A DNA stretch of 64,000 bases from Diplonema japonicum (lineage: Eukaryota; Protista; Euglenozoa: Diplonemea): NCBI GenBank assembly GCA_964019335.1, contig OZ025661.1, positions 186,001 to 250,000 on the forward strand, in the 5' to 3' direction. Below the pieces are notes generated by a model, which saw nothing but the letters and a program-made list of their open reading frames with translations, searched no databases and was not told the DNA's origin. Both the position numbers and the translations under genes were made by a program. Below are positions 6,069 to 59,351 of the stretch, in pieces (positions within the stretch are counted from its first letter, which is position 1; each line of letters opens with the position of its first letter).

Positions 6069-6100
<32 letters not shown>

Positions 6101-6150
6101 ACATTTAAGGGTACCTGCGGTATGTGGCAGGACGCCTGAAGAGTCTCAAT

Positions 6151-7833
6151 CTATCTCTTGATCGAACCTTTCTGCTGTGGTGTGGCCTTCGGCCCCTCGT
6201 TCGCCCTCCTCGGTACCTTAGGTATAAAACCCTCAACCGAGTTGGTACGGACACAATAGTTGTACAGTTGTTTCTCAAGGATGTGGCGGGTCGCCGGGGA
6301 GGCGAATACCGGTCTAGAGGAGTAGCCCCTTATGGAGCCGTTGTAGTAACCCAACGTGCGAAGGGAGTGGACAGAGGCTACCGAAGCAGCTGGAATGAGG
6401 GGCGCTATGCGCTTATTGGTGTGGATGCGTTCTAGTGCCGCTATCACCCGGCCTATGACACGCGCGCTCTCCTGGATGTCCTCACCCTCTCCACAAGGCG
6501 AGAGTCCTTCTGTGGCAATGAAGTCCACGGCCAGCTCAAGCCTGGAGACCTGTCCACCTGTTGTACCCCAGTGAAGGGCCGAGAGCCATCGGATGACGTG
6601 CGGGAATAGTCGCGGGAGGTACTGTTGCCTCAAACCGTTGTCGTAGTACCACCTCAGTGACCGCGGCTTGAGCAAACACCCCTTCTCGAAGGGCCTGTTC
6701 CACAAGTGAACACTAAAGTCCACAGTCTTCTTTCGTGCAAAGGCGAGTTGCAAGTTGCCAGTAATCTCCGCCATCATTAGCTGTAACTCAGCTGTTTCCA
6801 GCACGAGCCCCCCCGTCGCAATGCCATGCAGTTGTGTGCACCGGGGCCACTGGTTACGTTGTGCGCATAGTGCCGCCCGCTTCTCGGATGCTGTCCTGAT
6901 GTGCTCGTGTGCCTGACAGTCCCAGAGGGTGTGCTCCAGGAGCCTTGACGTATGTTGTGAAACGTCGAAAGTAGCGTCGCAGCCCATGCACTTCGTCCGC
7001 CCCCCGACCGTGTCATTGATGACCTTGGGGTGGAATGGGAAAACGGCCCCCACTATCACCTGTAGCACCCTTCGAGCTTTGGGCGGATTGCGAGTCGCCA
7101 GGTGTAAGTGTAGCCCGTTGGTGGCCTTCTCGTCGATGTTGCCCGTCCCCTGAAAGGAGGGTCTGCTCTCTTCTAGGGCCGTTCGCAGGTGGACCTTCAG
7201 GAGCTTCCTGACCTCGTGCTTCAGGGCCCTTGGCTCCAGGGGTACCCATTGCCGCGCGAACTGCGCCCAGCTGGACCCCAGTTCCCCCAGCAGTTCGTGG
7301 GTCTGTCCGAGCATCCCGCAAGGGCCGAGGGGGCTCCCGCCCCGGGCGGCTTCCTTGTACTTGTCCCTGCACGTTTTAACGAGTGCCCTGGACCCTTCGT
7401 CGCTTTGCATCATTCGCGCAAACGTCGTGATTCTGCGGTATGCGGCTGCTGAATAAGGGTCCAGCCTGTGACCTTTGAAAGCCACCCCAAGGTAGTTCGT
7501 CATGTTCGCTGAGAGCAACACCAGTTCATCCGGGTTGGTGGGCCCCGGGTTGGGGTGAATGTCACCATGTGTGAGGAGTCTCCTCCGAGCTTCGCCGGCA
7601 ATTGACTTCCTCGGACGTTTGGTAACGGGTCGGTGACCTCGAGGCAACGCCACCGGCCTGCGGCGTGAGCATAACGCACCGTTGGAGGGTGCGCCAAACC
7701 AGTCGGAGGGTATGCAGCGTGGGCTGAGGAGTGAGAGCGCGTCGAGGGTTAGCCCGTCCAGCGTGATCAGAGTGAGAAGTGCAAAAAGGAAAAGGAGCAC
7801 GGGCCGGAGTAGGGAGCCTGACCACGAGGATAG
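6151..7833 (-). pseudogene. Retroelement ORF2 remnant (2A-like motif, APE and RT core deleted, CCHC C-terminus)
   Basis: RRRLLTHGDIHPNPGPTNPDELVLLSANMT|NYLGVAF...KCMGC...LEHTLWDC...QKGSIKR*; no RT catalytic xxDD motif seen. Confidence 0.75.
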
Positions 7834-9368
7834 TCAGTTGAACTCATCCTGCGTGACCAGAGCTAGGTCCATCAGCGCCGCCTGGTCAGCGTCCCTTTTT
7901 CGTGAGGGGGAAGCGGATTCAGCGGCCGCCCGTTTAGCATCAGCCTCCGCTTTAGCCTTCGCGAGTGGGGACAGTGGGAATTCAGCCTCCGTGAGCTTAA
8001 CATGAGACCTTCCCTTGGGGTGGTATGCACGTCCGCAGCGCCGAGGTTTGTCCTCGACAGCCCATTCTCTGATCGAGATGGAGGGCATGTTGTCCGGTCG
8101 GCTGATGATGAGAGTAGGGGGGGGCTCCTCTGCCCTCGCTAGCCATCTCCCCCCGGGCATCCGGCTGAGCTTTTTTATTTCCCACCCCTGCATCCTGCAG
8201 TCGTCTGTGATGTCACACGGGTGCTCCCCGTACGCGGCCCCCTCGATCACATACTTCCTCCCCACCTGATCTTCCGGCAGGAACACCGCGCCAAGAGATT
8301 GCGTCACCACGTGCCGAGCAGTGCCTGGCGGGAGCATGATCGCCAGACCGATGGGAGTGACTGTGGGGGCAATACGGAAGCTAGAAGAAGGCCCGGTGAA
8401 GGTACGAGGAACATCCACCGGTCGGATCGTTTTCTTGAGCTGGATGACTTCCAACCGTTCCTCGGGGAGGGCGTGTGTCCAGTACACGTCGTTGTCACCG
8501 CTGTTGCTGAGGAGGCGGCTGGCGTGCAGCCAGTCCACGCGCACCCTTGCTGTTGCTCGCTGCGCCGTCCTCTCAACCCGCCATACGTTGTCCCTCGTGA
8601 CCTCGTAGGCTTCCTGTTTGTCCCTAGCAGCTAGCATCGCCATCCTGGCCACTGCCTCCCCGTTCGTTGTTCTCGCCCACTGCTCGTTGGAGCAGAAGTC
8701 CTTGGCGACAATCGCCACGAGGACCACTGTCCTGTTCGTGCGCGTCTTGGGCTTGTCCCCGTCGGCCATCGTCGGGTCGTATTGATCGCCGGACGTCCAT
8801 AGGGTCTTGATGCCTCTGCTAGTGGGGGTCGCAACCTCCCTGGCGCCCTCGAACCGGGTTGTGAGACGACGCGGTGGTCCAGCTCCAGGCTCGCCAACCT
8901 CGCCGCTAGGACTTCGGGATCGGGACAGTTGAAGTAGATCCCCTTGAGAAGTGGTTCGGGGACTTCGTTGAAAATGGGCGCGCCGTTCCAGTGTTTTGCG
9001 TCCAGGGAGGTCTTTGGTGGGGGGCCTCTCAGTTTGTCAGCCCACGTGGAGGTCACAGGTCGCTTCTGCTGGGTCTGATGCCCGACCGTCTGCCACTTCC
9101 CGGCCTTCTGGTGCTGCGGTTGTTGCTGCTTGGTGGTCTGCTTCTGTTGCTGTCCCTGCTTGTGTTGCCGTCCCTGCTTCTGTTGCTGTCCCTGTTTCTG
9201 TTGCTGTCCCTGCTTTTGTAGCTGTCCCTGCTTTTGTTGCTGTCCCTGCCGCCCTTCCATGAGCGCTAAGAGCATGCCAATTATCCTGACACACTCTCCA
9301 CTCCATGCCCCTTGGCTTGCCAGCTTCTCTGCTCTGTCGAGCATCTCTCCTATCAGCTTCCTATCCAT
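7834..9368 (-). pseudogene. Retroelement ORF1 (gag-like), one frameshift near 8865
   Basis: ORFs 8631-9368 and 7834-8769 overlap in different frames; a 1-nt shift at ...DHRVV/LTTRFEGAREV... would join them. Confidence 0.65.
9146..9250 (-). repeat. 18-bp tandem repeat encoding (QQQKQG)n in ORF1
   Basis: About 5 copies of GGACAGCAACAGAAGCAG-like units. Confidence 0.85.
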
Positions 9369-9555
9369 TTTGGTGGGAAGACAAGTTTTTTTTTTTTTTT
9401 AAAGATTATATTATTATTATTATTTTTTTTTATATTATTTATTAGTTTCTTGAGTTTATAGTATAGTCAAGTATGATTGATGTTCCACTCCCGTGTTAAA
9501 AGGAAGTAGAGATTAACCCCGTTAACGCCTATATTTATCAGCCACGGGGAGCGAC

Positions 9556-9571
9556 CAATAAAGTACAGAAA
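9556..9571 (-). other. Remnant of euglenozoan spliced leader 3' end (TTTCTGTACTTTATTG)
   Basis: Plus strand caataaagtacagaaa is the reverse complement of the last 16 nt of the Leishmania/Diplonema-type SL exon as I recall it. Confidence 0.75.
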
Positions 9572-9587
9572 AAAAAGAAAAAAAAAA

Positions 9588-9916
9588 TGGGGCTTTGATT
9601 GCAACACTAGGTGGCGTTAAGCGTGCAATGAAGCACGAACGACCTACTTGATTACAGGGGGCGCTCCTCGGCCGAGCAGTAGCTTCTTCTGCGTTCCACG
9701 TCGTGTCCTTAATGCGTGCGGTGTGCTCAACCCTTGCCGGGGCGTCCCGGGTAACCAAGATTCTGCGCTTGTGCAGTTTGCTGCCTGTTCGTCACCCTGA
9801 GCATCTGCTTTATGATCTTCTTCCACTCGGGCGCTACCGGTGATGACCGACGAGGAGGTCAACAGCGAACAACACATCTGATGTATTTCTTATATTTCCA
9901 TGTTATCCCCACCACC
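9588..9916 (-). mobile_element. 329-bp non-autonomous retroelement/SINE-like repeat, copy 1
   Basis: 4 mismatches versus 25448-25776, same ends, A-runs on both sides; ends PPVIK* + 56 nt with hairpin + (T)n. Confidence 0.85.
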
Positions 9917-10163
9917 CAAAAAAAAAGAAGAGCTTGACTGGCATTGGTGTGTGTACCCCAGACGGAGGGGAGAAACCTGCGCTATAAGACGTACGCTTTG
10001 TACCGCTCCCCACTGCTTGGACTCGAAGGCCCGGTTCATGAAAGAAGAGAGAAAAATCAAGGGGGGGTGGAGAGGGAACTAAACTTTAAGAGGGCAAAAA
10101 AAATATATATAAAAAGTGCTTCATTAATTGCACCGGGTTTGCGTAGTTTGGGCGTTACGGGGG

Positions 10164-10194
<31 letters not shown>

Positions 10195-10590
10195 AATGTC
10201 ACCAAGGAAATCTGTAAAATAAAGTGTATTTTCTTCCCTTTCAAAAATACGGGTCACTCCAAAGAACAATTTTCTCTCGGTCTTCCTAACGGAAGGGGGT
10301 CAAAAAAAATACGAGTTTCAGAGTTATGATGCATTAAGGAACTGGCCTCCTTGAGACGAGTTTTGCACCCTTTTTAGAGCCGAAGCCACAAAAAAAAAAA
10401 AAAAGAAGAGGAATCAAAAAAAAAGGGCTCCGTGTTAAACTCTTTCACTTTCTTTTTTTATTTTTAATTTACCTTTTTTTTTTTATTTTTTTCATTTCTT
10501 TTTTTTTTTTTTTGGGAGGGGAAAATATAAAAAAAAAAAAAAAAACGGGGGGAAATCTTTCGCGCAACTTTTTTTTTTTTTTTTTTTAAA

Positions 10591-11200
10591 TCACCCGAGC
10601 ACCAGCCGAGAAGTACCAGTTCTCTGAGGCAGAACGATATCGGCTGCCGAGTGGCAAATTAGACCGGATTTCTTTGCTGCTGGCGAATGGACGTGACCCC
10701 CTTTGAGAGGGGACCCGGAACCCCCTGCAGCAGCACCCTTCTCCTTATGTTGCTCCTGTTTCCACCGCTGAATCTTGTTCCGCACAGAATCGGGAGGAAG
10801 CCTATCTTCCGCTTCCAAGGCGGCGGGGAAAGTAGAAGGCCTGCAGGGTATGATGCTATCAGGCTCATCAGAACCCAAAGGCTGTACTATACTCGCCAAC
10901 GTTTGGATGGGTGCAGACTTTGTGCGGTCTTTACGTGCCACCTTCGCGATCTTTTCTTTCAAGTCGTTCAGCAGAGCAGGCTTCTGCTCCCTCAGGTACA
11001 CCCGGATGATATTGCCGCACTTCTTGTAAACCTCGATGATGACACCCACAGCCGCGCTCCGCACCTTCCCGTTGGTGCATTGAAAGCACCCCACAGCATA
11101 GCCCATGATAGCCTCGGTGGAGAGCGAATTCTCTTTAAATTCAAACTCCTGAATAAGCGTGGTCAGTATGGATAATCTCGCCAGCATCATTTTCCAGCTG

Positions 11201-11231
<31 letters not shown>

Positions 11232-13065
11232 GAATGTAATCCCATACTTCTGCCCCGATTTGCAATAATCAGGTTGCATGACGATTGTGGAGATGAAGGT
11301 GGCACCTATCTTCTGATGCCGCGCGAGGAGGAGAAGCAGATCGGCGGACGCCTTAATTATTTTTATATTATTTCTTTTCATTTTTTTTTCTTTTTTAAAA
11401 CACCTGAGTAACCACCGATGCCGCTCCACTAACATGCCCTATCAGCTTGTGTATGACAAGGTTGGAGAGGTGCCACTTCAAATGCTCGGCGGCGATGATC
11501 GGCCCGTAGCTGTGAAGGAGCGCGGTTAGGTACGCAACGCACGACACGAGAAGCTGCGGGATGGCGTCGTTGATACCGATCTCGGCAATCTCAACGTACG
11601 ATTCGAAGACAGCCCTCGTGAGCTGGTAGCTGCTTTGCTGCACTGGAGAAGAGGAGAGGGATGCGGTCAGACGGCCGTAAACATGATCACGAAGCTTCCA
11701 CTTCTTAGAAAGAATGCATATGATAGAAGGCGTGTTGAGGAGGGACGTCCACCGCGCAACATCATCCTTCTGTTCCTTCGTGAGCTTCATGTCCGGCTCC
11801 AAGCATGCCATGTCCTCCTCCTCTTGCTCCTTGACCTCCGTGTCTTTAAAGGCGTCAACATCGCACACCTCAATCTCAACCTCTTGTTTCAGGGTTTTTA
11901 AAATGCTGGAAGGGACGTTGTTTAGGTATTTTTCGGATTTCGGGCCGATTTTCTTGTACACTTCAACAACAAGGCTGGTGGCGGTTTTTCTGACTTTCTG
12001 GTTAACGATGGAGAATGATGTGACTGCAAGCCCCATGACCGCTTCAACCCCGAAGGGTGTCGGGAGCTCCGCAAGCTCGTGTTCTTCCAACAGCGAGATC
12101 AACAAATTGATCTTCCCGATGGTGATCTTCCACGTGTCTGGTCCGTTGCTCAGCTCGCCGGTTGTGGCTTGTTCGGCGACGGCGTTGACCCCGACACGAG
12201 GGTGCCGTGCCACAGCAAGAAGACAGTCCTTTGCAACATCGCGAACCCTTCCGTTCACATCCCCCAACCTCATGATCAGATTTGTAACAATCGGCTGGCA
12301 GCACTCCCTCAACACGTCAGAAGGAACGTCGTGAAGATACGACACAAGCATGTACTTCATAAGGTTCACAGAGGATAGGTACACCTGGAAAACGGAATCT
12401 GCTATGGAAACGGAGATTATTGGAAAGATCAGGGTGATGACCTTATCCTTCTTCACGCCTGCTAAGGTGTGCACGGCGTCTTCCAGCTTCTTCAAACCCT
12501 CCGATCGGTGCTGCCACCTCTGCGATTTTAACGCCTTCACGTGTTCCATGCCCACTAGTGAGATTAGATCTTTGCTTTCCTCATGAACATCATGAGGTAG
12601 AGCACTCGGCGGTGACAATGGACGGGGCGCGTTTTCAATTCCAGCCGAGTCCAATGTAGAAGATGGGATTTCAGAAGTGGTGGTGGTTTCTGTCGGCTTC
12701 GCCAGGGACGATCGCCGTTTTGGTTTTCTCTCTTTTCTGTGTTCCCTCTCGCTGGTCGGGTCTTTTGTTTTTCTTTCTTTCTTCGTTCTTGTGCCTGATA
12801 GTCTGTCAGCTAGGCCTTTCGGCGGTCTTTTCTTGCTGCTCTTCTCGCCCTCTTGGAAACCTAAAATTTCAAAGCCGCATGAGGCCCGTTGCACTTCCAC
12901 AGCTTTGTTCTCGTTCACCTCCCTTGGATTCGGTACTTCAGCATCCTGTATTTTGATTTTTATTTTATAAATTTGTTATTGTTATCCACATACCACATCT
13001 CCAGGCAGCCCAACCCACTCGTCCTCCGAATCACTGTCTAGCGTCCTTGGCTGCTCACGTGTCAT
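10591..13065 (-). CDS. TOG/HEAT-repeat protein (CEP104/TOGARAM-like), introns 12946-12993, 11352-11403, 11198-11247
   Basis: LKSQRWQHRSEGL, RLGDVNGRVRD, KKWKLRD and NGKVRSAAVGVIIEVYKK are TOG-type HEAT motifs; three GT-AG introns fuse ORFs 11395-12918, 11226-11435 and 10591-11265. Confidence 0.8.
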
Positions 13066-13863
13066 GTCAAGAAAAGGAAGAAAATCTTTAAGGGAGGGGG
13101 ACAAATAAAAAAAAGGGGGTGGAGGAAAAAACAAACAGCGAGGGACGGGGGGGGGGGCTTTTTTTTAAATTCCTTTTTTTCTTCGTTTCCCCCTCCCCCT
13201 ATGAAAATAAAAGAAAGGGAATCCTGCCTGTGTGGTATATGTGATAGTTTTTTTTTTTGACACCCCCCTGTTTGTAACGCGGGAAAATAATAAGAAATAA
13301 ACAAGAGGGGGGGGGGAAGGGGAAAACAGAAATTCTAAAAGTGGTGATTTAGTTTTTTTTTTTTAAAATTCTACGCTCGGGAAGAGCAAGAGAGGATTGT
13401 TGGTTGTTAGTGAATTTGTGTGAATTACTCCCAAAAGAAAAACTTTACCCCCCTTTCAAAAAAGTTGAGCAAAACAAAGAAGCCGAGAGAGTCATTCAGG
13501 GATTGCCAAATGCTAACAGTCACTATCAGTTGGTCTTTTGTTTTCTTCTTCTTTCTTTTTTTTTTCGTTCTTAAAAAAGGCTGGTTTCAGGAGTCAAAAA
13601 CAAATACCTGGAAAACAATTCTAACTTTCTTCTTCTTTTTTTTTTCTTTCTTTCAAAATGGAACACACCTTTTGAAGAAGAGAAGAAAAAAAAAACGAAT
13701 CTAAGAGAGGGAAAACAATTACTTTTTTTTAGTCCCCCCCAAGAAAAATTAAAAACCCCTTTTCTTTTCTTTTTTTTTCGAACCCAAAGATATATAAAGT
13801 AATATATCGGCACGGGGTTCAAAAAAAAAACTTTTTTTTTTAACACAACGAGGTTTTGACTTT

Positions 13864-13894
<31 letters not shown>

Positions 13895-13950
13895 ACACAA
13901 GAGAGGAAAGGGCGAAAAAATCTAAAAATCTACAAAAAAAACTTTTTTTT

Positions 13951-17599: not shown

Positions 17600-17656
<57 letters not shown>

Positions 17657-17873: not shown

Positions 17874-17917
<44 letters not shown>

Positions 17918-24368: not shown

Positions 24369-24536
24369 TTCTTTTCTTTTTTTGTATTTTTCTCTCTTCC
24401 TCCCTCCCTTCTGCCTGAAATGAGATATTCTGATTCATAAAAGGTTTTTCGGGGGGGAGGGGGTATTGCAGTCGGAAGAAAAAGAAAAACGCGAGAAACT
24501 CGGAAAAGCACCCGGAGAGGAGAGGAGGAAAAAAAA

Positions 24537-25438
24537 CTCAAAGTACAGGACAAGCCCCCCGCTAGAGGGCCGCCCTATGGGAGGGGGGGTCTATCTGTTA
24601 ATACTCCCCTTCTGGAGCATTGCTTTCATCCCGATTGAGGCCCTGAGCGTCTTGCAAAAAATATATGAGTTAAAGGAAGTCTTTGTGAGACGCCCCCTTG
24701 TTCTCATGCTCTACCTGCACCTATCCCCCTTCAGCAGCGGTTTCTCCTTCTTCGGTGGTCGTGCCGGCCTCCTCCCCAGCTTGGCTACTTTTTCCCTTCT
24801 TTCCTTTGCCCATTGCTTGCCTCGGGCCCCGCCGCCTTCCGTGCCTCCGACACGCTCCACGTCTTTAGCCACAACGGTGGCGCGTCCTCCTTCCTCCTCC
24901 TTCGTTCTTCGATGTACATACCGGTACCTTCTGCACCCCCGGCCTGCTTCGCTTTCTTCGCGTCGCTCGCCGACAGATAGACCAGGAGGTCCATCTTGGT
25001 GAGCTTGCCGTCCCACCCCTCGCCCCTCGGGTCTGACAGCCCTCGGGTCCCGATCCCCATGGATCCGAGCACCTTCTTCGTGTGCTCTCTCGCGTCGGCC
25101 TCGACCTGCTCCCAGCCTTCCCCCGCCGCCGGTCGCCTCCATACCACTCTCAGCACCTCGGTGGCGTTCTCGTCTTCGTCCTCGTCCTCGTCCATCCAGC
25201 GTTCCTGCTGCTGCTTGCCATGTGTCTTCGGCCATCCCGCCTCTGCCGTTACCCTCACCGCGCGTACCACCTTCCCCTTCCCTGGTCTCGCCCGCGCTAC
25301 CTGCACCCACGAAGGTGCTGCCCCCTGCTGGGGTTTTTGCTCTCCTCCTGAGGGAGAAGACCCAGGGCCACCACTTGGAGGTTCCCCAGCCATGATTGAT
25401 TGTGATTTTGTTAATTCCAACCCAATATCCAGCCCCTG
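24537..25438 (-). mobile_element. Second internally deleted retroelement (ORF1 start at 25393 fused to ...QKGSINR* end)
   Basis: Homologous C-terminus and 3' hairpin; A-runs on both sides. Confidence 0.75.
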
Positions 25439-25447
25439 AAAAAAAAA

Positions 25448-25776
25448 TGGGGCTTTGATTGCAACACTAGGTGGCGTTAAGCGTGCAACGAAGCACGAAC
25501 TACCTACTTGATTACAGGGGGCGCTCCTCGGCCGAGCAGTAGCTTCTTCTGCGTTCCACGTCGTGTCCTTAATGCGTGCGGTGTGCTCAACCCTTGCCGG
25601 GGCGTCCCGGGTAACCAAGATTCTGCGCTTGTGCAGTTTGCTGCCTGTTCGTCACCCTGAGCATCTGCTTTATGATCTTCTTCCACTCGGGCGCTACCGG
25701 TGATGACCGACGAGGAGGTCAACAGCGAACAACACATCTGAGGTACTTCTTATATTTCCATGTTATCCCCACCACC
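25448..25776 (-). mobile_element. 329-bp non-autonomous element, copy 2
   Basis: Near-identical to 9588-9916. Confidence 0.85.
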
Positions 25777-25835
25777 TTAAAAAAAAAAACGGGGGAATGA
25801 TGGGGGGTGGTGGAAGAAAGAAAACTGTAAAGCCT

Positions 25836-29998: not shown

Positions 29999-30129
29999 AT
30001 TCTTCCCGCCACCCTCCCTCTTTTCGTTATTTTCTTTTTTTTTTAAGGGGGGGGAAAAAAGAGAGAGGTAGACTCATCAAGAAAAAGAATGTATAATCGG
30101 AATGGAGTATTTAAAAAAAAAAAAAAAAA

Positions 30130-30261
30130 GAGACATTTAAGGTACCTGCGGTATGTGGCAGGAAGCCCGAATTAAAAACTCGATAACTGATGTACGAGAC
30201 AAAGGAAGTCAGTGTTTGGTGGCACCCTGCACAAGAACAGCCTACTTGATTACAGGGGGGT
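30130..30261 (-). mobile_element. 132-bp SINE-like member of the (T)n-flanked family
   Basis: 3' 34 nt match 6098-6132 (one indel); 5' 19 nt are identical to 9643-9661; A-runs on both sides. Confidence 0.8.
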
Positions 30262-32012: not shown

Positions 32013-32053
32013 ACTCAAAGTGCAGGACAAACCCTCTCATGGAGGGCCGCCCT
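32013..32053 (-). repeat. Retroelement-type 3' hairpin motif right after the 1022-aa gene
   Basis: 34/41 identical to 24536-24576. Confidence 0.75.
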
Positions 32054-32062
32054 TGAGCACAG

Positions 32063-35000
32063 CTAGGAAAGGAGCTTCTCATCGTCGATGACCAGCCCGA
32101 GTTTTTGCCAGATGCCTGCGAACACCGACCGGAGATCCTCGACATATACTATGTCGTTTGCTTTACAAAATTCCATTTTCTTCATGATGTACACATCGCC
32201 GAAGTCCTCCGACTCGATGTGCGCACGACTGGCAGTGAGCATGAAGTCGGTTTGTTTTATGCCGGTGTTCAGCTTCCCAACCCCACGACGGAGGAGATCA
32301 AGATGAGGCCGGATCAGTTCGAAGAGGGACTCGTCACTACCACCACCACCACCGTTCACGAAAGACTCAATACGCGCGATGACAGCATTAATATCTTCGA
32401 CCTGCCTAGCCAGCCACACGGACGGGTCGCGGATGTTCTGGTGCTGCATGAGGTCGCATTTTGTTATGACGATTTTAAAAGGTGTTCCTGATGAGAGTAT
32501 CACCGCAAGTCTTACGATGAAGCTGTTGTTCCTCGTCGCTTCTGTGATGCCGCACAGGATGTAATAGTTTAACGGAGTCACGATCTTCTCCCCTCTGGCA
32601 GCAGAGTCGCTCAGACCCGGGTTGTCGATTACTCTCAGCTTCTCGCTGAGCGACGAGCGGTAGCCAGTCTTTCGTTTCGTCCCGCCCGATGTGTCGCTGT
32701 TGCATGTTGCTTTTGTTTCGAAAACAGTGTTGCACAGGCTGCTTTTACCGTTTCTGGTATCGCCCATGACCTGGACGACGAAGGAGTCTGCCATAAGTTT
32801 TCGCAGATTGGCCACCACCAAAACGCACCACAGTAGTTTTGCAAGGTCCGCCCTGTCAGCCGGCACGCAGAGCCCCATCCCCAAGTGGTGGTCTTTTCCG
32901 TAGAAGGTCTCCCAGTGGTCGCGAACAAACTCCCCGGCGAATTCGTTTATCTCTGTAGAGAGAAGCGTGTCCAGAGATTTCTTCATCTTATTCGTCACGA
33001 GGTTCACCAACAACTGCTCTTTGATAAATATAGACTGGTCTCGGTAGTAGTCCTTCTCGATTGAGGCGATGAGAAATTCTACTTTTTTAACGTACCCAGG
33101 ACCGACCCTCCAGAAAAGCTTCAGTGTTTGGTATTGAAGACCGACTAAAACGGGAGCGCAGATCAAGCCTGCAGGGTTCAGGGTGGCAAGGGTAGCTGCA
33201 GTTCCGAGGCTTGCAAGGGTTTTTGTGATCAACTGCGCGACCTGGTGTGGAACGGCAGAGCTGAGGCAGAGTTGGATGTCAGCGGTTTCTAGGGTCTTCA
33301 GGGGGCCGTGGATCTCCTTGTTGAGTAGTTCGAGAATCTCTTCATCACATTTGTCGTCGGAGAGGGTATTCACGTAGGTGGCGAGGGTTTGGTTGTAGGT
33401 AACAAGACACGGCATTCCCAAAATCCTTGCCCCTTGGTTTGCCTTGTTGTTTTCCACCACCTTCTGGACGTACTGGATCGACCTGATTGAAGCGAGCAGT
33501 TTTGGGAAGACAAACTCGTTGTCTTCATTGTGCAGCAACGCGTATTGTATGCCCCTCGTCACAAGTTCCCCCACAGACATTCTTTCATAGATTTCTCCGT
33601 ACTTGCTCAGCATGAAACACGCGAGGTCGCTGCTTTTGTCCAGTTTCACTGTTCTTTCAATAGTTTCGTCCCCGGAAATGCAGCATAGTGCCAGGGTTTT
33701 CACCTTCCCCCAGTTCACTTCAGAGTATCGAAGTTTCCCGGAAACCTGATTCATGCTGATGTTTATGAGCCGCACGGGATATTGTTTCACGCTCTCGTCA
33801 TGTGCGATAACCTTCAGCTGGATGGTGTCCACGAAGCACATGTTCGTCCCGCTGACCTTCGCAGTCACGAAGCTGTTGATGCACCTCAGCGTGCAGTTCT
33901 CTATAACGGGGAACACCTCCGGCTGCAACGCTTTACTGTACGCCGCTGTGCTGTGCCACCTCAAATCGCTTGCTGCGACTGAAGCCGTGCTACTACAGAT
34001 AAACGGCAGCACGTCGCCACTAAGCTCATTTATCGCATTGTTTTCTGCCACGCAGATCACTCCAACAGGTTCCCTCCTCTCCACAGACCTTTCCAGTTCC
34101 TTTCGAACGTCTGCTAAGGCGTTTTGAAGCCCTTTTGAAACGCCTGTAGGCTTACACTCCTTTTCGATGTCGATCCCAGGCAACGCTTCCCAGAACAGGT
34201 CAGGGGACTCCTTCGGACCGCATGCTTGTTTCGCCCATTGCAAGGCACCCACTCCGTGCTGAGCTTTTCTCATGGTAAGGTAGGGAACAGGGTCTGCCCG
34301 GGTTATGGTCTGTCGGATGCGCTCTTTAATGAGAAAGAGGGCGGGCTGGTCGGGGAGGAAGATCAATGGCGTCCCGAAGGTGAAGCATATTTTTGTTTTC
34401 TCAGGGAGGTAGCTGTTCTTTTCGAAAATGTGCAGCATATCGATGGCCATCTTTCCTCCATGGTCATACCCGGAAAAGGCTATGGTACTTTGGTCTGGAA
34501 AGTACTTCGATATATGCTCCTTGATGTCATTCTTCGTCTTATTAATACTGGAATGTCCCATTTTGGACAATGGCCCACGGCACCCCACATAGACGGTGTG
34601 CTTGTCGGCCTGCACTGTGAAGTAAGGTTCTGTCTCTGTCTCTTCTTCATCAGAATCGTTCAGGTTCGTTGAAGGCTCTCCGTAGATAGTGTAAACACCC
34701 TGTGCTGTTGTGTTCAGCGTCGTTGGGATTGTGGTACTCTCGTAGTGCGTTATAGGAAGGATCATGTGGTGCATGGCTTCTGCGACGAGTAGAGCATTTC
34801 TGTACCTTTCTGTGGTGAAGACGTCGGAACTCAACCCTTCGGCATGGGTTGTGAAGGATCTTGATGCGCTTTGTATGGTTACGGTGTAGCGTGCCCCTTT
34901 CTTCAGGGCTTTTAGGAGTAATAGATTGCTGCCTGCTTCGCTTGTTACTTTCTGCGGTGGGTGATCTTCGTCTTGTTCGTCGCTCCGGACCTGGATTTTC

Positions 35001-35131
35001 AACTCTGTGGTTTCTTCTCCCATCCACTCTACCAAGGCCTCTCCGTGACCCTCGTACACCTGCACTCCGTATGTGCCGCGCGATTCCACCTTAACCTCCT
35101 TCGGGGCTGTGAACCTACGTAGGAAGTCCAT
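32063..35131 (-). CDS. Class-3 lipase-like (degenerate) + TM + P-loop GTPase fusion, 1022 aa
   Basis: VGCRGP, FSGYDHGG (degenerate GHSxGG), CFTFGTP, DPVP; GDTRNGKSS, VIDNPG, TKCD as G1/G3/G4. Confidence 0.75.
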   Translation of the reverse strand: MDFLRRFTAPKEVKVESRGTYGVQVYEGHGEALVEWMGEETTELKIQVRSDEQDEDHPPQKVTSEAGSNLLLLKALKKGARYTVTIQSASRSFTTHAEGLSSDVFTTERYRNALLVAEAMHHMILPITHYESTTIPTTLNTTAQGVYTIYGEPSTNLNDSDEEETETEPYFTVQADKHTVYVGCRGPLSKMGHSSINKTKNDIKEHISKYFPDQSTIAFSGYDHGGKMAIDMLHIFEKNSYLPEKTKICFTFGTPLIFLPDQPALFLIKERIRQTITRADPVPYLTMRKAQHGVGALQWAKQACGPKESPDLFWEALPGIDIEKECKPTGVSKGLQNALADVRKELERSVERREPVGVICVAENNAINELSGDVLPFICSSTASVAASDLRWHSTAAYSKALQPEVFPVIENCTLRCINSFVTAKVSGTNMCFVDTIQLKVIAHDESVKQYPVRLINISMNQVSGKLRYSEVNWGKVKTLALCCISGDETIERTVKLDKSSDLACFMLSKYGEIYERMSVGELVTRGIQYALLHNEDNEFVFPKLLASIRSIQYVQKVVENNKANQGARILGMPCLVTYNQTLATYVNTLSDDKCDEEILELLNKEIHGPLKTLETADIQLCLSSAVPHQVAQLITKTLASLGTAATLATLNPAGLICAPVLVGLQYQTLKLFWRVGPGYVKKVEFLIASIEKDYYRDQSIFIKEQLLVNLVTNKMKKSLDTLLSTEINEFAGEFVRDHWETFYGKDHHLGMGLCVPADRADLAKLLWCVLVVANLRKLMADSFVVQVMGDTRNGKSSLCNTVFETKATCNSDTSGGTKRKTGYRSSLSEKLRVIDNPGLSDSAARGEKIVTPLNYYILCGITEATRNNSFIVRLAVILSSGTPFKIVITKCDLMQHQNIRDPSVWLARQVEDINAVIARIESFVNGGGGGSDESLFELIRPHLDLLRRGVGKLNTGIKQTDFMLTASRAHIESEDFGDVYIMKKMEFCKANDIVYVEDLRSVFAGIWQKLGLVIDDEKLLS

Positions 35132-39010: not shown

Positions 39011-39631
39011 TTTATGTGTGGTACCTAAAGGGCTCTGCAGTTAGATCGTGTTGCAAATGAATATAAGTAATTTATTACATTCGGCACTACCCTTACATAA
39101 AAAAAGAAGAAGTGTGGATTCAAAAAAAAAAAAAAAAAAAGAAAGTGTCGGCCGTTCGTGCAGGAAGTAAAAGGGAAACCGTATGGAAAAAGAGAACAAA
39201 AAAAACCTAGGAAAAGGGAATAAAAAAGGAAGTTCGTCATGTGAGTAGCCGCCCCCCCCAGACCTATTGCTCCCATTTTTAAAAAACAAAGAAGAAAACG
39301 TATGGGGAATGAGGAAAAAAAAAACCCCCACCAATATAGGAAAAAAAAAACCTCCCCCGCCAGTCCCCATATAGGGAAAGTCAGGGTGAGACCATCTATA
39401 ATTTTGTCTTCAATTGTTTTTTTTTTTCCCCTTTTTTTCCTTTTTGTATTGTACTTTTCTCTCTTCTTTTTCTTTTCTGAAGTGGAGCGAACTGGAGAAC
39501 GAAAGGGGGGGGGGGGGGGGGGGGGCGAAAGACACACTTTTTTATCCTTCTTTTCTTTTTCTCTTCCTTTTTCCTTTTTTTATACTCTTGCTGCCCCCTT
39601 CTTACCCCCTTTCAGAATAGGAAAAAAAAAA

Positions 39632-39671
39632 GGCGATGTTTAAGGGCAAATCCCACTCGAGGACCACCCTG
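39632..39671 (-). mobile_element. 40-bp hairpin-only member of the (T)n-flanked family
   Basis: 16-nt identity (aatcccactcgaggac) with 59144-59159; tttaaggg end like 6098; A-runs on both sides. Confidence 0.55.
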
Positions 39672-49589: not shown

Positions 49590-50046
49590 TTAAAGTGCAT
49601 CATGTGTACTCTGAGTGAAGTATCAACACTGTCCGACCCCCCTCGAAAGAAAAGTACGTTGAAAAAAAAGGGGGGGGGGAGGTCGACCAAAAGAAGAATG
49701 AATTTCAAACATTCTTCTCCCCGCCTTTCGTGAAAACAGAAGTTTTACGAGTAGAAGCAGGGAACGTGGTTTTTCTTTTTAGCATGCGGTGAAAGAAGGG
49801 AAATCGATTCATTTTAGGGAGCAAAGCCCCCTCGTGGCAGGCAATTCCTTCATCAGACGAGAGGCATCCGTTCTGATACGGCAAGAGAATACTATTCCCA
49901 TCCAAAAATAAAGAGGGAGGGAAAAAAAGCCATCTGTAGAAACCTATGTAGGAATCTTTAAAAAAAAGGTTTTTCGAAGAAACACATAAAAGTAATGAAA
50001 ATTTCCTTTTCGTGATTTTTTTTTTTCCTCCCACCACCTCCTCCAC

Positions 50047-52980: not shown

Positions 52981-53253
52981 CTGGATCAACCTCACCGCCC
53001 TCACAACGAGCAACAGTATCCTCAAGGGCGGGGAAATCTGTTTCTTCCCGAAGCCTCTGTAGTAAAAACTCCGGTTTTCTCTCTTCGGCTTCTCGGGAAT
53101 CTTTTTCTGGCTCGCATTCTTTGTGATGATCCCCGAGGCGGTGATGGGCTCTAACACAAAACGTCCCATTTTCCCCATTGCCCCCCCTCCCCCTTCCTCC
53201 CCCTTTCGAAAAGAAGAAATTCACTATGGGTTAGTAACGACTAACAAAAAGGG

Positions 53254-53285
<32 letters not shown>

Positions 53286-54167
53286 TAGCTGGTGACAGCC
53301 GGCCAATGTTTGCCTTATCCTTGTCTCTCCGCCGAGCACCGTCACCCTAGCACAGACTTCCCTGAAATGACTCGCTTAAGGGGAGGTGTCGTTACGCACC
53401 TAGGCCCGGAAAGGTCTTGCTGCCCCTAAAGATATTGACCGGTCCCCGAGCGCAAGGTGGGCAACCAAGGCAAAGATCACAAAAGGATCGAACAAAAAGC
53501 CTTATCAAGGCCACTATAGGTCCCGGCCTAGAATTTTGAGCTGGGCACGTGATGACAATCTGGACACGAAAGATGGTGAGCGGTGATACAAAATCCCGGA
53601 ATCCAGCTTTCACTAAGAATCCTGATTTCGGCACTATTTGTAACCGCATCTTCTTTTCATTTCTTTTTTCCCTCTTTTCTTCTCTTCTTCCTTCTCTCTC
53701 TTTTCTTGGATCCCTCCTTCACGGTATTTTGAAATTAGCGGGCTGAGCCCTGCGATGGGGGGGGGGGAGGAAAAAAAAAACTGCAATGTGAAAACAAACT
53801 GGTGAGGTAAAGATTTAGATATCGTTCGGTTTTGTTCCCCCCCCCCCCAAAAAAAAATCACCAGTTTCTTTTTTTTTTCCATTACAGTATTTTCAATATA
53901 GTTCAATCAAAAGAAAAAAAAGAGAAAAAAGAAAAAAAAACTAAATAGTGAGTTGCTCAACAACATATTGGCGATCTTGCAACGGCCACCACCTCCATCT
54001 GGAGGGGTTTTGTGGACATTCTTCTTTCGCTATGCGAAGCTAACGCGAGTACGCCTCCACCAGTTCGTTATTATTTCCAGCTCGTTATTTTCTAAACTGC
54101 AACGGTATAAATAGCTCTCCCTTGCACATCTTTGAGGCACACTTTTTTTTCCTCCTTCCATGTTTGT

Positions 54168-54488
54168 TTACTGTCCTGGTTGCCAGACCGTGGCGTTGGG
54201 GTTCAACTGGGTAGTGGGAAGTGAAGCGGCCATCATGGGGAAAGGCATTTGCTGCTGGGATGCAAGATTGAGGTAAGCTGCTTGCTGTTGTTGTTCCTCG
54301 GTGCTGGCGACACCACGCTGCTGCTTAATCATCAGCGCCAGTTGTGCAATAAGGTCGTCCCGCTGCTTCAACTTTGCGTTCATCTCTCCAAGGTCCCGCT
54401 TCATCTTCTCGTTCACAGCAATCTGGTTGTGCATGCTCTGGAGAAGCCCTTGCTTCTGCATCAGCATCATGTCCAAGATGTATGTCAT
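54168..54488 (-). CDS. Small coiled-coil protein with C-terminal PAM2w-like motif, copy 1
   Basis: TQLNPNATVWQPGQ*; tandem paralog nearby. Confidence 0.75.
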   Translation of the reverse strand: MTYILDMMLMQKQGLLQSMHNQIAVNEKMKRDLGEMNAKLKQRDDLIAQLALMIKQQRGVASTEEQQQQAAYLNLASQQQMPFPMMAASLPTTQLNPNATVWQPGQ

Positions 54489-54870
54489 TCTTCAACTCCT
54501 GCATGTTCGTCAATAATAAGCAATGGAATGACGAGGCTGGAACGAACGTGACAATCTCGTGTCAGAAGAAAAAAAAAGAGCTAAGACGGATAAAAAGGTA
54601 AGAAGAAAAAAGCATCATACGGTCTTCATAAGCGGAAGCTCACACGTAGCATATCATTCTTTCCTGTCGAAAGCTGCTTCACCACGATGCCGCTATAATC
54701 TGCCCCCTCAAGAATGCATCGCCCACCCTTAAGGTGTTGTACAGGACGAAGTCTCTCATTTTCCTTCTTACAAATATAGAAGAAGTACTTTAAAAAAAAA
54801 AAAAAAGAAAGAAACAATGCCAAGATATAAGCACACTCCCTCCCCTCCTCCTCTTTTATTAATAACACTA

Positions 54871-55251
54871 TTACTGTCCTGGTTGCCAGGCCGTGGCATT
54901 GGGGTTCAGTTGGGTGGAAGGAACATTTGCGGCCACGGAGAACGGCTGGGCCTGGGCTACAGGGGACGGAAAGGACATCTGTTGCTGGGACGCAAGGTTG
55001 AGGTACGCCGCCTGCTGCGGCTGTTGCTGCTGTGGTTGTTGTTCCTGTTCCTTGCTCCCCCCGGTGCTGGCGACACCACGCTGCTGCTTAATCTGCAGCG
55101 CCAGTTGTGCAATAAGGTCGTCCCGCTGCTTCAACTTTGCGTTCATCTCTCCAAGGTCCCGCTTCATCTTCTCGTTCACAGCAATCTGGTTGTGCATGCT
55201 CTGGAGAAGCCCTTGCCTCTGCATCAGCATCATGTCCAAAATGTGGGTCAT
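54871..55251 (-). CDS. Small coiled-coil protein with C-terminal PAM2w-like motif, copy 2
   Basis: TQLNPNATAWQPGQ*; N-terminal half near-identical to copy 1. Confidence 0.75.
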   Translation of the reverse strand: MTHILDMMLMQRQGLLQSMHNQIAVNEKMKRDLGEMNAKLKQRDDLIAQLALQIKQQRGVASTGGSKEQEQQPQQQQPQQAAYLNLASQQQMSFPSPVAQAQPFSVAANVPSTQLNPNATAWQPGQ

Positions 55252-55360
55252 TTTCTTTTTTTTTTCTTCTTCTTCTTCCCCCCTCCTGTAGTCCAACCTT
55301 TAAAAAGACAAAAACAAAACCAAAAAAAGGAAAAAAGAAAAGAAAAATCAAAACTCCCCG

Positions 55361-56461
55361 CTAGCAATCTATCAACTTATCAAATTCAGACAACTGGATA
55401 CTCGGGCTGGGACGAACAGTGTACGCCCCTGCAATCTTTGCGTGGACAGCAGGATCTAACTGGTCATAAAGAGGTGGGTTGTGGGTGAATTCTCTCAAGT
55501 AGGTGAACGCTTCCTGATGAGCACCGATTGTTGTGCACAGTTTGTGTAAATTTATTTCGATCGAAGGGTGCGTCAGTTCGAAGGTTTGAAGCTTGCTGTA
55601 CCATTCTTTTGCGTAGGTATACGCATCGCGTGTACCGATTGTGGCGAGGCACTTGAACAAGCTTTTGGTCGTCTTCAAGGAAGGCTTCTTGTAAGGCCGT
55701 GCTGCTACCGCCATCTCGAAGACCTTCTTCAAAGAAGGAAGACTTCGCGAGAGCGCAAAAGTTTCCATGTACAACACAATATAAGAGTCCCGGTCAGGAG
55801 GAATGTTACCCGTGTTTAAAAGGTGCATTGCGAGATTTTGTTCTTGAAATCTTTTACAGATTAACAACAGGCTTCTATGCAGCCCGGCTTGTGCGTACTT
55901 GTTGTCGTCCCATTTTTCGAGTGCTTCGTTGTACAGCATCACCGCCTCAGAGACTGAACCAGAGCATGAGATCGCAATGTTGTCGAAAATGGCTGAGTAC
56001 ATTGGGGCTAGGTCGGATAAGACGTTTCGTTTTTCGAGTTTTCTTGTTGCGTCTCTTGCTTGAAGGATATTGCCCACCTTGAGGTGCAGCAGTATGTAGT
56101 AGAGCTGCAGGACTGGGCTTGGATGGAACTTTAGGAAGTCCTTGCAGTATAACAGAAGATTATGTTGATCTCTGAAATCGCACTCCTTCGTGTTGCGCAA
56201 GATGTGCCTTCCGAGCTTGCTGTGGAACCAGTACATTCGATCCTCGTCCTCCACTTTCATCCGTGTCATTCCGCAGGCGGTTTGTGCGAGGTTTAGAGGG
56301 CGCGGCGTGCGGCCCATCATCATCAAGTAGCCCATCGCTTGGTAACACAAGGGGTCCTTGTCTACTGCTTCAGCCAGATCCAAGTGGGATAACTTGTGTG
56401 CTTTAAAGTCCTTTTCCAAAGTGTGCGACCATGCGCTGGAACACAGTCGTGTCCGTCTCAT
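55361..56461 (-). CDS. Helical-repeat (PPR/TPR-like) protein, possibly mitochondrial
   Basis: Start MRRTRLCSS resembles a targeting peptide; IPPDRDSYIVLYM and KPSLKTTKSLFK are PPR-like. Confidence 0.55.
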   Translation of the reverse strand: MRRTRLCSSAWSHTLEKDFKAHKLSHLDLAEAVDKDPLCYQAMGYLMMMGRTPRPLNLAQTACGMTRMKVEDEDRMYWFHSKLGRHILRNTKECDFRDQHNLLLYCKDFLKFHPSPVLQLYYILLHLKVGNILQARDATRKLEKRNVLSDLAPMYSAIFDNIAISCSGSVSEAVMLYNEALEKWDDNKYAQAGLHRSLLLICKRFQEQNLAMHLLNTGNIPPDRDSYIVLYMETFALSRSLPSLKKVFEMAVAARPYKKPSLKTTKSLFKCLATIGTRDAYTYAKEWYSKLQTFELTHPSIEINLHKLCTTIGAHQEAFTYLREFTHNPPLYDQLDPAVHAKIAGAYTVRPSPSIQLSEFDKLIDC

Positions 56462-56891
56462 TTTTTTTTTCTTCTTTTTTTTTTTTTTTTTTGCTTGAAC
56501 AAGAAAAAAAGAATTATTGCAAAAAAAAAAAAAGTGGAGGCAGCGACATCGATCCTTCTGAGCTGACAGCTGTCCTGTTCCCCGAGGGAGCGCCTGCGGG
56601 GGGTGTGATCGAGAACATAAGACAGGCTTCCACTGCCCAAGGTACATGGTATCCTAGCAAGCCTTCTCCGTGAGCAAGTGTTGACCGTTGGGTTACTTTC
56701 TTTGCAGGGTGATACCGGGAAAACAACAAAAAAAAAAAAATACGAAAAAGAAATTTCAAAAGCTAGAAAACAAAAAAAAAAAAAAAAAAAAAAAAAATGG
56801 AAATGAAGATAAAGACTAACAGAATGGGGGGCAGAAGGGAAGGAGGGAGTGTACTCGTAAAACACCCGGAAAAAGAAAAAAAAAAACTTTT

Positions 56892-56922
<31 letters not shown>

Positions 56923-57661
56923 CTTCTATGGAAAAAGCGTGAAGGAGATATAGATTGAAAAAATAAAAAAAAGGGGGCAGGCGAGCTAGACGGGGTTGAT
57001 GTGCAATTTGGGGTTTATCCTACAGAAAAGGTTAAACCCGAACAAAGTTCCCTCAACCCCTCCCCTTTTTTTTCACACCATATAATACAATCCATTTTGT
57101 GAAGAAAAAAGAAAGTCGGCTGCCAAACCACACCCGACACCATTAAAGCCACCGAAAGTTCTCGGAGAGAGGCGGGTATTTCTTTTCACTTTTAGAAAAA
57201 TAAAAAAGTCAACCTTCTCACCGAAAATGAGAGACTACCGGTAAAGTAAAATTTTTGGTTTGGTATGTTTTTTTTTTTTCCCCTCTTTTTTTTTTTTTTT
57301 TCCCGTTCTTTTCTCTACTGGGGGGGGGGGGCTTTTTTTTTTCTCCCCCGTTTCTACCAAAAAGAATTTTTTTTTGTTTTAAAAGCGCCAGGAAATAAAA
57401 AACATTTCTGCTTTTTGGCTGGCTCTACTGCTAATGAGGGGGAAATGGCCGATTCGCTTATTTGTGCATAGGAAGTAACCTAGAGAAGCTTAAAACCCGT
57501 GAACACGTTGCCAGCGGTCCCCTTTTGTTTATTCAAGTCAAAGACCCATTTCTTTACATTGTCTTTTTTTTTTTCTTTTCGTTTCTTTTCTTTTTTTTCC
57601 GAATTGGTACTTAAGGTTTCTCCTTAAAAGATACATTATTAAAATAAATCTTTTAGATAAA

Positions 57662-57694
<33 letters not shown>

Positions 57695-58106
57695 AAGAAA
57701 GAAGAAGGAAAGGGATACAGACAGGCTACTTGAAGTAGGTTCCAGTTCTTTTTGGGCAGCATCACATCAACTTTTTTTTTTCTTTTTTTTAAAGCTGTCA
57801 TCAAAAGTGTTGATTAGAAAAGTTTAAAAAAAAAAAAAAAAAATGTTGCTGTGACATTGGCACAGCAGAGGGGCTTTGTTGGTACATAATTCTATCAATT
57901 AATAGATGAAAAATTCAATTCTACTCACAAAAAAAGTATTCATTACCAACAAATTATGTGTCAAAATATATTATTTTTTCTTTTTTTTTTTCTTTTTTCC
58001 AGTTTAGAGTCTTATTACACCCTTTTCGTCATTATGCGAAATAAAGAACCAATTCACCAACTTCTCCAAATTTCTTTTTTTTTTGATTAAGAAATATTTT
58101 TTGGTC

Positions 58107-58148
<42 letters not shown>

Positions 58149-58686
58149 TTGCAAAATGACGGAAAGGATACCTTTTAATAGAAATTGTGTAGGTAAGTTA
58201 TTTGCATTCCTTTTCCTTTTCTTTCTTGTTTGTTTTGCTGGTTTGCTAATTTATGTGCTCATCCGGCTGGTAGTTGCAGAGGCAGAACAGTTGGGTTTTT
58301 TTTTTTTTTTTCTCTCACTTTTTTTTCTCCCCCCCCCCGCTTTTTTCCTTCCCCAATATAATACCGCAATTTAAATCAATAAATTGCTGCAAAATGTAGG
58401 CCGCTAAAAAAAAAAAAAAAAAAAATCGTTACTTTAAGACTGTATTGAAATCCCACCATTGGTTTTCGAAATCGAAAAAAAGTTCCATAATGTTACTTTA
58501 TGTTCAAATACGGTATTATTGATTTTTTTTTTTTTGAAAAATAAAAAAGAGACATTTTGCAATACAAAATACTTCTTGCGTAAGGCCACAGCGTCACTAT
58601 AAAACGAAAAACGTATTAAAAAAAATCTCTTAATTATTTTCTGGGGCTAAAAAACCTGCAGCTTCACCCCGTCTAAAAAAAAAGAG

Positions 58687-58723
<37 letters not shown>

Positions 58724-59128
58724 AGACCCCCTCCTTTCCGATGTTTGCCTCGGTACCAAATCTTTTCTTTTGGCCTTTCTTTTTTTTTTTTTTCGCTTTC
58801 CTTTTTTTTTCCTTCTTAAATATATATATAAGAAAGAAGGGAAAAAAAAAAAAAAAAAGAACCAAAGTTTTGTTGTTTGTACAAATCTAGTTGAGCCAAC
58901 CGAAAGGGTAACCGACAATGTTGCCACTATTCTTTTTTTTTTAGCAAAAGACAATAATTGTTAAAAAATGGAGACAATAATTGAAGGAAAAAAAATCAAC
59001 GTAAATAAAAAAAAAAAATTCGAGGGGTGGCATTAGAGGGGAGGTGGCAACAACACACCCAAGTTCCTTTCCTTTAAAAAAAAAGGGGGAGGCAAATGTG
59101 TACATGTGGGATGAGAATGAAAAAAAAA

Positions 59129-59347
59129 CTCATAGTAAAAGACAATCCCACTCGAGGACAGCCTCTTGTGGTGTGAGTTCCTATCTATTAATGCTCCCCT
59201 TCTGGAGCATAGCCTTCGTTCCTATTGTCGCCTTTAAAGCTCTTCGTAGTCTCGACACGCGTTCTTTCTTGTATGTCCCTTTCAACTCCTGTAGCTTTTG
59301 CGCTGTCTGTCTTGATGCGAAGATCGGTCTCCTGTTAAAGCCTATTG

Positions 59348-59351
<4 letters not shown>
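59129..59351 (-). mobile_element. 5'-truncated retroelement 3' end inserted in (T)n
   Basis: Encodes AIGFNRRPIFAS...KAMLQKGSINR*, homologous to IRGYSSRPVFAS...QKGSIKR* at 6151; A9 and about A31 flanks. Confidence 0.8.

Follow-up and report, generated by a model that had tools for sequence, protein, structure and literature searches.

L1-type long interspersed nuclear elements (LINEs), which integrate at TTTT/AA sites from a T-rich primer strand and carry an A tail on their sense strand, mobilize short interspersed nuclear elements (SINEs) as partners. The retroelements that we describe here in a 64,000-nt stretch of Diplonema japonicum DNA (OZ025661.1, positions 186,001–250,000; hereafter the window) and elsewhere in this genome share with them a pair of open reading frames (an ORF1, and an ORF2 with an APE endonuclease, a reverse transcriptase (RT) and a Cys/His domain), frequent 5′ truncation, target site duplications (TSDs) and a homopolymer tail whose length varies; in both cases, new copies also insert into older tails and short partners are mobilized. 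They differ from them by a sense-strand tail made of T instead of A, by TSDs that start with T, by a primer strand that would be A-rich instead of T-rich, by a tail that is seemingly encoded in DNA rather than added after transcription, by a 3′ hairpin and by the spliced leader found on some copies.

Other described systems share some of these features. The trypanosomatid elements ingi and L1Tc, with their short partners RIME and NARTc, are APE-RT LINEs embedded in polycistrons that have a 2A-like NPGP motif, poly(A) tails and an RNase H. The D. japonicum elements are likewise euglenozoan and embedded in polycistrons, have short partners and encode a putative 2A-like motif ahead of the endonuclease (GDIHPNPGP in the window copy), but they carry T tails and Pfam did not match any RNase H (PF00075) in the ORF2 of the copy at L034 (names in L designate loci examined elsewhere in the genome, and those in C designate contigs). 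The "stringent" LINE/SINE pairs (eel UnaL2/UnaSINE1, CR1, RTE) have a common 3′ stem-loop and short tandem-repeat ends, without homopolymer targeting. Here also, short elements carry a LINE 3′ end including its hairpin, and one SINE-like body is found on three LINE-type ends; however, these ends bear a long T run and a homopolymer tract is targeted. SLACS, CRE and CZAR are also euglenozoan retroelements linked to the spliced-leader sequence, but they are site-specific in spliced-leader genes, use a restriction-like endonuclease and end in A, whereas in D. japonicum insertion is dispersed and the leader would be gained by trans-splicing of the element RNA.

The nearest analogue in behavior is Zorro3, an element of the L1 clade that integrates at poly(A) tracts in Candida albicans and has A tracts on both sides (PMC3956500). 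Like Zorro3, the elements described here have homopolymer tracts at both ends and integrate into a homopolymer tract near genes, but these are T tracts, the mirror image of the A tracts of Zorro3, which involves neither polycistron nor spliced leader. Poly T is also listed among the tails of plant SINEs (PMC8825457). These share a T-rich 3′ end with the short retroposons of D. japonicum; however, their T run is short and usually read as an RNA polymerase III (Pol III) terminator, whereas in D. japonicum the 6-kb LINEs themselves are T-tailed, with runs of up to 52 nt. We know of no autonomous LINE with a T tail that would be the partner of plant T-tailed SINEs, and our literature search for LINEs tailed with poly(T) or poly(U) did not find any autonomous LINE with a sense-strand T tail. 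The genome papers of D. papillatum and D. japonicum do not describe the present elements.

Our analysis, whose genome-wide counts cover 62.5 Mb on 132 contigs of D. japonicum, indicates that these elements are probably APE-type LINEs of about 6.1 kb and short non-autonomous partners in which an oligo(T) tract replaces the poly(A) or A-rich tail usual for LINEs, and that they are probably copied by the following cycle. A sense-oriented copy would be transcribed within a polycistronic unit, and its RNA could be trans-spliced to the spliced leader, as the presence of this leader in DNA copies shows. The RNA would keep, just past the 3′ hairpin, a U tract copied from the T tail of the donor, which the inherited, interrupted tails suggest. 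The endonuclease would nick a genomic T tract on its A-rich strand, given TSDs that have T as their first base and lie after the tail. The A-ended primer would then anneal along the U tract and reverse transcription would proceed from the 3′ end, in line with constant 3′ ends and variable 5′ truncation. A second break, at or just after the T run, would leave a new copy bracketed by T runs, and its 5′ junction, often located within U-rich stretches of the spliced leader, may be sealed by microhomology joining.

T Tails at Constant 3′ Ends

The initial annotation reported eight related pieces in the window and assigned them to a single retroelement family. Our re-inspection confirmed the eight pieces at their positions on the minus strand, but not their unity, as they belong to at least five 3′-end types of retroelements devoid of long terminal repeats (non-LTR retroelements): A (…CTTAAATGTCTC), C (…ATCAAAGCCCCA), B/E (…TTTAACTCATATA), F (…ACTTTGAG) and D (…AAACATCGCC). 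The reported C-termini QKGSIKR (one piece), QKGSINR (two pieces) and PPVIK (two pieces), each directly before a stop codon, were all retrieved, and another PPVIK before a stop was found at 30261. After each stop, a 3′ untranslated region (UTR) of 52–56 nt precedes a T run, and seven of the eight pieces are flanked by T runs on both sides, the exception being 32013–32053, which has no T run.

The genome-wide counts show how constant this association is. For the A type, 370 ends precede a run of at least five T and none precedes three non-T bases. Among the 290 exact C-type ends, 216 are followed by at least five T and, here again, none by three non-T bases. By comparison, a random position in the intergenic DNA of the window is followed by TTTTT in 4.3% of cases and by AAAAA in 4.35%. 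The T flanks therefore stand far above the local background (586 A- and C-type ends followed by at least five T). The sense 3′ ends are not followed by (A)n, since none of the A- and C-type ends has three non-T bases next. Each of about 25 independent family A copies ends with the A-type sequence, then a T-rich run, then an unrelated flank. The first pure T run of 28 independent A-type ends has a median length of 18.5 nt and a maximum of 42 nt; tails range from T8 to T52 for F-type ends and from T6 to T10 for B/E-type ends.

Every end type also has a predicted hairpin located about 10–15 nt before its end, with a sequence pattern common to the types. In the 3′ UTR of the family A copy of the window (6098–6150, minus strand), RNA folding predicts a hairpin of −19.3 kcal/mol (z −4.1, equaled by 0/200 shuffles) whose outer stem, GAGAC/GUCUC, closes on the last base before the tail. 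This is the only hairpin that clearly beats shuffled sequences, the others being weak when taken alone (for example, z −2.55 for 32013–32053).

Some tails are interrupted, and the same interruptions are found at different loci. Among 32 family C tails, ten open with T8–10 then C, mostly with further T; nine of them are at loci other than 9569–9587, and in one of the ten (25439–25447) the C possibly belongs to the adjoining family B copy. The tail T8-CTC(C)-T8-C is common to three unrelated loci (L049, L068 and L071) and TC-T(n) is common to three family A copies. This recurrence at unrelated loci suggests that the U tract is encoded in the DNA of the donor and co-transcribed with the element rather than added to the RNA, and that the primer anneals at variable points along it. 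Alternatively, the RNA could end at the hairpin and a terminal uridylyl transferase could add an untemplated oligo(U) that would pair with the A-ended primer. In favor of this, Euglenozoa are rich in these transferases, and near-identical copies have tails whose length varies widely (3–45 nt). However, an untemplated U tail would not reproduce T8-C-T(n), T8-CTC-T8-C and TC-T(n) across loci, and we therefore consider uridylation unlikely.

Target Sites and Direction of Copying

Family A copies are truncated in 5′ at at least 11 different points and their 3′ end is constant; therefore, reverse transcription begins at the sense 3′ end. The complete 39-nt spliced leader (3′ end CAGTTTCTGTACTTTATTG) heads two family C copies (L037 and L041), in which it stands directly before GTGGTGGGG, and one family B copy (L039). 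The presence of this leader in DNA copies indicates that the template was an RNA in sense orientation that had been trans-spliced. (T)n-CTGTACTTTATTG is the beginning of six full-length family A copies and of a C variant in L017, the break being at the UUU of the leader. In most family C copies, a T run and 0–3 extra bases (mostly A or G) precede the last G of the leader, where the copy begins. As these breakpoints are common to several copies and fall where the leader is rich in U, the 5′ junction may form by microhomology joining with the T-ended target strand. A T run is found upstream of 9 of 11 truncated family A copies and of nearly all family C copies, compared to a background of 6.9%.

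The TSDs are T-rich and begin with T; the primer strand therefore likely ends in A, in mirror image of L1. A T tail lies between the element and a recognizable TSD in L047 (TSD of about 55 nt after T29) and in L057 (T10G after T26), and the TSD is also placed after the tail in L006, L056, L049, L062 and L070. Since the tail separates the element from recognizable TSDs (L047, L057, L006 and L056), it is not merely target DNA. New elements also often immediately follow the T tail of an older one, both in the window (9569–9587 and 25439–25447) and in L063, L065, L066 and L067. Taken as a whole, the T-rich TSDs, the start of copying at the sense 3′ end and a tail distinct from the target agree with the initial proposal of an insertion at T tracts with inverted polarity, but its poly(U) RNA end has to be refined to a tract that seems to be encoded in DNA. 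By contrast, the (T)n-CAG sequence at 25438, which the initial annotation had related to trans-splicing, is the junction of a 5′-truncated copy and not an acceptor of the family itself.

It could also be argued that the elements lack any intrinsic tail and insert inside existing T tracts, the flanking runs being halves of the target or its duplication. Indeed, the genome is very rich in T/A runs (about one run of at least 10 nt per 500 bp; the window has the same density, with 60 A and 69 T runs, i.e., equal between strands), many TSD candidates are pure T, and the 5′ run exceeds the 3′ run in L044, L055 and L061. Against this, a T run of 14–29 nt separates the element from a TSD that contains bases other than T in L047, L057, L056 and L006, the 3′ run is often far longer than the 5′ run, and interrupted tails are common to several loci. 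Insertion without any tail is thus quite improbable. We give very little credence to another explanation, in which the RT would add untemplated dA to the nicked DNA end before engaging a hairpin-ended RNA. R2-type enzymes are known to add untemplated nucleotides before they engage a template, and the tails are homopolymeric, but these tails reach 45 nt with inherited interruptions, and base pairing is suggested by the fact that T tracts are also the targets.

Two last explanations are rejected. The homopolymer richness of the genome and the intergenic location of every piece could suggest that the T runs simply belong to the intergenic background or that the pieces form a multigene family. This is contradicted by hundreds of dispersed copies whose ends are identical and whose flanks differ, with 5′ truncation, TSDs and an APE-RT ORF, and by 0 of 660 ends followed by three non-T bases for a T5 background of 4.3%. 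An antisense polyadenylated RNA as template, the T run being the poly(A) tail of the other strand, would need no new biochemistry but predicts, contrary to observation, that the sense 5′ end is constant and the sense 3′ end truncated, and cannot yield sense copies headed by the spliced leader.

Some observations nevertheless weigh against the copying cycle with an oligo(T) tail that we propose. About one-quarter of the C-type ends have fewer than five uninterrupted T, and the piece 32013–32053 is devoid of T run. As many TSDs are pure T, their limits are ambiguous; in L047, the left border of the TSD is CGGC versus GT beside the T run, so that an A-ended primer is likely but not proven. Furthermore, the sense strand carries T runs and A runs at equal frequency, and the model therefore leaves the orientation bias described below unexplained. 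It should also be emphasized that we infer from DNA copies the presence of the U tract in the RNA, the origin of this tract and the true RNA 3′ end.

Orientation Relative to Genes

The long ORFs of the window are almost all on the minus strand. The initial annotation considered that the elements are always in the sense of the polycistron; this holds within the window, but genome-wide only about 90% of the copies follow gene direction, i.e., a strong bias that departs from random orientation without being a rule. Orientation was called from the codon-usage score of the flanks, and discordant loci were checked by Pfam. This score placed 28 insertions in the same direction as the neighboring genes and three in the opposite direction, and left 20 uncalled. 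Among the opposite calls, the Pfam check showed that L053 is in fact in the same direction and confirmed L049 as antisense to an alpha-galactosidase gene. Neighboring copies are on the same strand rather than on different strands in ratios of 62:12 for A-type ends and 53:15 for C-type ends, and the bias is already present in young family C copies (about 16:2).

In 118 kb of flanks, the element strand carries 205 T runs and 195 A runs of at least 10 nt. Because these runs are equally frequent, the supply of targets does not explain the orientation bias, which could result either from directional integration or from rapid selection. A broader proposal, which we regard as possible but doubtful, is that a whole guild of diplonemid LINEs and SINEs swapped poly(A)-dependent priming for DNA-encoded oligo(U) priming, that their integration is directional, the A-rich template strand being nicked preferentially, and that they are a main source of the unusually dense T/A homopolymers of this genome.

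The strands of the elements are also arranged in chromosome-scale blocks, minus on the left and plus on the right (for example on C1, C4, C7, C10, C11 and C26). This arrangement looks as if, on either side of an internal switch region, the gene clusters were directed toward the contig ends.

Structure and Coding Capacity of the LINEs

The search for a full-length APE-RT copy, recommended in the initial annotation, retrieved 6.1-kb copies, one of which has uninterrupted ORFs. The full-length family A element is 6092 bp long without its tail (reference copy L033) and includes ORF1, a 2A motif, an APE endonuclease, an RT and a Cys/His C-terminal domain. In L034, the frames are uninterrupted: an ORF1 of 538 codons, one in-frame stop and an ORF2 of 1457 codons, whose product (1457 aa) has a 2A-like NPGP motif followed by APE, RT and Cys/His C-terminal domains. 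This predicted organization suggests that ORF2 may be expressed by read-through of the stop, then peptide release at the 2A-like motif. The RT domain is of the non-LTR type (Pfam RVT_1, E 5.2e-22 in L034 ORF2). The Exo_endo_phos domain lies N-terminal to the RT (residues 98–321, E 3e-5), with 24.3 bits in L034, just below the cut-off of 24.5, and 25.8 bits in L032. On the basis of these predicted domains, the elements are APE-RT non-LTR retroelements. ORF1 and ORF2 of L034 are in the same frame and are separated by a single stop (5020–5022), the CGDxHPNPGP motif being located about 70 codons downstream (compare 7540–7836 in the window).

Relatives of family A were found with 45% identity in transcriptomes and with 30–35% identity in D. 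papillatum; given this similarity and the D. papillatum matches, the former apparently come from other diplonemids. These diplonemid relatives keep the 2A motif (consensus CGDxHPNPGP) and the C-terminal SIxR, and C1179, C1182, H1198 and C1203 are invariant among seven of them. An Exo_endo_phos domain was also recorded for the relatives P0001 and P0003–P0005. The nearest solved structures, human L1 ORF2p and R2, are equally weak matches (both E ~1e-13), which do not fix the clade of family A. A scan of metagenomes gave 26 distant relatives (21–40% identity), and among the six best no homopolymer follows the ORF ends that lie within a contig.

Family C and Other Short Partners

Family C elements are SINE-like, about 326 bp long, and their copies show about 99.5% identity to a sequence made of the commonest base at each position; the two copies of the window (9588–9916 and 25448–25776) are 98% identical. 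They contain an ORF of 76–77 codons (MCCSLLTSSSVITGS…PPVIK, then stop), which 28 of 31 copies keep intact. Third codon positions show no excess of substitutions; there is thus no sign of selection on this ORF, whose integrity may reflect only the youth of the copies. No Pol III-type (tRNA) head, as expected for a SINE, was found: there is no tRNA in the window, and family C copies start with spliced-leader sequence. Family C is therefore better called, from its sequence organization, a SINE-like, mRNA-type non-autonomous retroposon than a strict SINE.

Bodies related to family C are also joined to A-like ends (30130–30261 in the window, L017 and L035) and to B/E-type ends (L006, L038 and L067). 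The presence of a C-like body on several LINE-type ends fits a recognition of the 3′ end by the enzyme of a partner LINE, which would mobilize these composite elements. No LINE partner carrying the main C-type end was found among the loci examined.

In L006, a tRNA-Lys(UUU) gene (542–612, minus strand) stands directly before the C-like element, and its 3′ acceptor strand AGGTGG overlaps the first bases of the element (GGTGGTGG). This overlap could be a chance microhomology at insertion or the mark of a tRNA-headed variant.

Elements of the Window

All the elements detailed here are on the minus strand. The family A LINE copy (6098–9568), followed by a T29 tail (6069–6097), begins with 13 nt of the 3′ end of the spliced leader (9556–9568); its limit, initially placed at 9571, stands only if three T are counted, as the copy itself starts at 9568. 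Its ORF1 is broken (ORFs 8631–9368 and 7834–8769). A remnant of ORF2 (6151–7800) encodes the 2A-like GDIHPNPGP, the Cys/His C-terminal domain and the C-terminus QKGSIKR. The copy aligns only with positions 1–2050 and 4703–6092 of the 6092-bp reference L033: a deletion located at about 7487–7491 spans reference positions 2051–4702, which include the APE-RT part, and a whole-genome search showed that the two halves stand about 2.7 kb apart in other copies. The absence of any Pfam RT match in this copy is explained by this internal deletion. Two family A copies thus carry different internal deletions, L009 (reference 659 to 4529) and the window copy (reference 2050 to 4703), in which APE-RT is gone and both ends are kept; each was seen once.

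Directly upstream, a T10-C-T8 tract (9569–9587) is the tail of a family C copy of 329 bp (9588–9916) and also the tract in or beside which the family A copy landed. This family C copy has a 77-codon ORF ending with PPVIK and is preceded by T9 then G (9917–9926).

The piece 24537–25438, initially reported as one element, proved to be composed of two. The first is a 5′-truncated F-type LINE 3′ fragment of 119 nt (24537–24655), with the C-terminus MLQKGSINR, a hairpin, the end …ACTTTGAG and a T8 tail (24529–24536). The second is a family B LINE remnant (24662–25438) that ends with …TTTAACTCATATA and a T6 tail (24656–24661); family B copies elsewhere in the genome cease to match at 24656. Other F-type ends, in L016, L022 and L062, carry T14, T52 and T10 tails, respectively. 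The family B remnant is truncated in 5′ (it is devoid of the spliced leader and of about 85 nt, the leader-headed 5′ end being found in L039) and internally deleted: full family B copies are about 6.2 kb long, and the parts 4–633 and 630–795 of the query stand 5.4–6 kb apart elsewhere in the genome. It is adjoined by the second family C copy (25448–25776), which has a T9 tail (25439–25447) and T11 plus AA upstream (25777–25789).

The four remaining pieces are shorter. A 5′-truncated C-like body with the PPVIK C-terminus is joined to an A-type 3′ end (30130–30261), with a T17 tail (30113–30129) and T9 upstream. The 41-nt piece without T runs (32013–32053) consists of an F-variant hairpin and end, with one mismatch to the T52-tailed end of L022. 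It starts 10 nt past the stop of a host gene of 1022 aa (32063–35131) and is now the beginning of the 3′ UTR of this gene. A D-type 3′ fragment of 40 nt (39632–39671), in which an F-like hairpin precedes a different end, has a T10 tail (39622–39631) and T7 upstream. Finally, an F-like LINE 3′ end of 223 nt (59129–59351), truncated in 5′ and encoding the C-terminus MLQKGSINR, has a T9 tail (59120–59128) and T30 upstream (59352–59381).

Across the window, the intergenic runs of the sense strand reach 40–53 nt for A and 39 nt for T, without fixed order. The T run upstream of an element was initially proposed to provide a polypyrimidine tract for trans-splicing. In the cis introns of D. japonicum, the tract that precedes the 3′ splice site is reported to be A-rich (PMC12621601). 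The long intergenic A/T runs may be linked to these published A-rich tracts (PMC12621601).

Implications

Descriptions of LINE copying near-universally feature a T-rich primer strand and, at the 3′ end, either poly(A) or short repeats. In D. japonicum, the same machinery would run with the opposite base pair, in families that look active, and the tract that binds the primer could be inherited through DNA instead of being added to the RNA. The bias toward gene direction, present even in copies that are about 99.5% identical, makes transcription-coupled integration testable in a polycistronic genome. Furthermore, these T-tailed elements may help explain the abundance of long T and A runs in this genome. 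Each insertion adds and duplicates T tracts and, if the broader proposal of an oligo(U)-primed guild is true, the elements could possibly also be a source of processing signals between genes.

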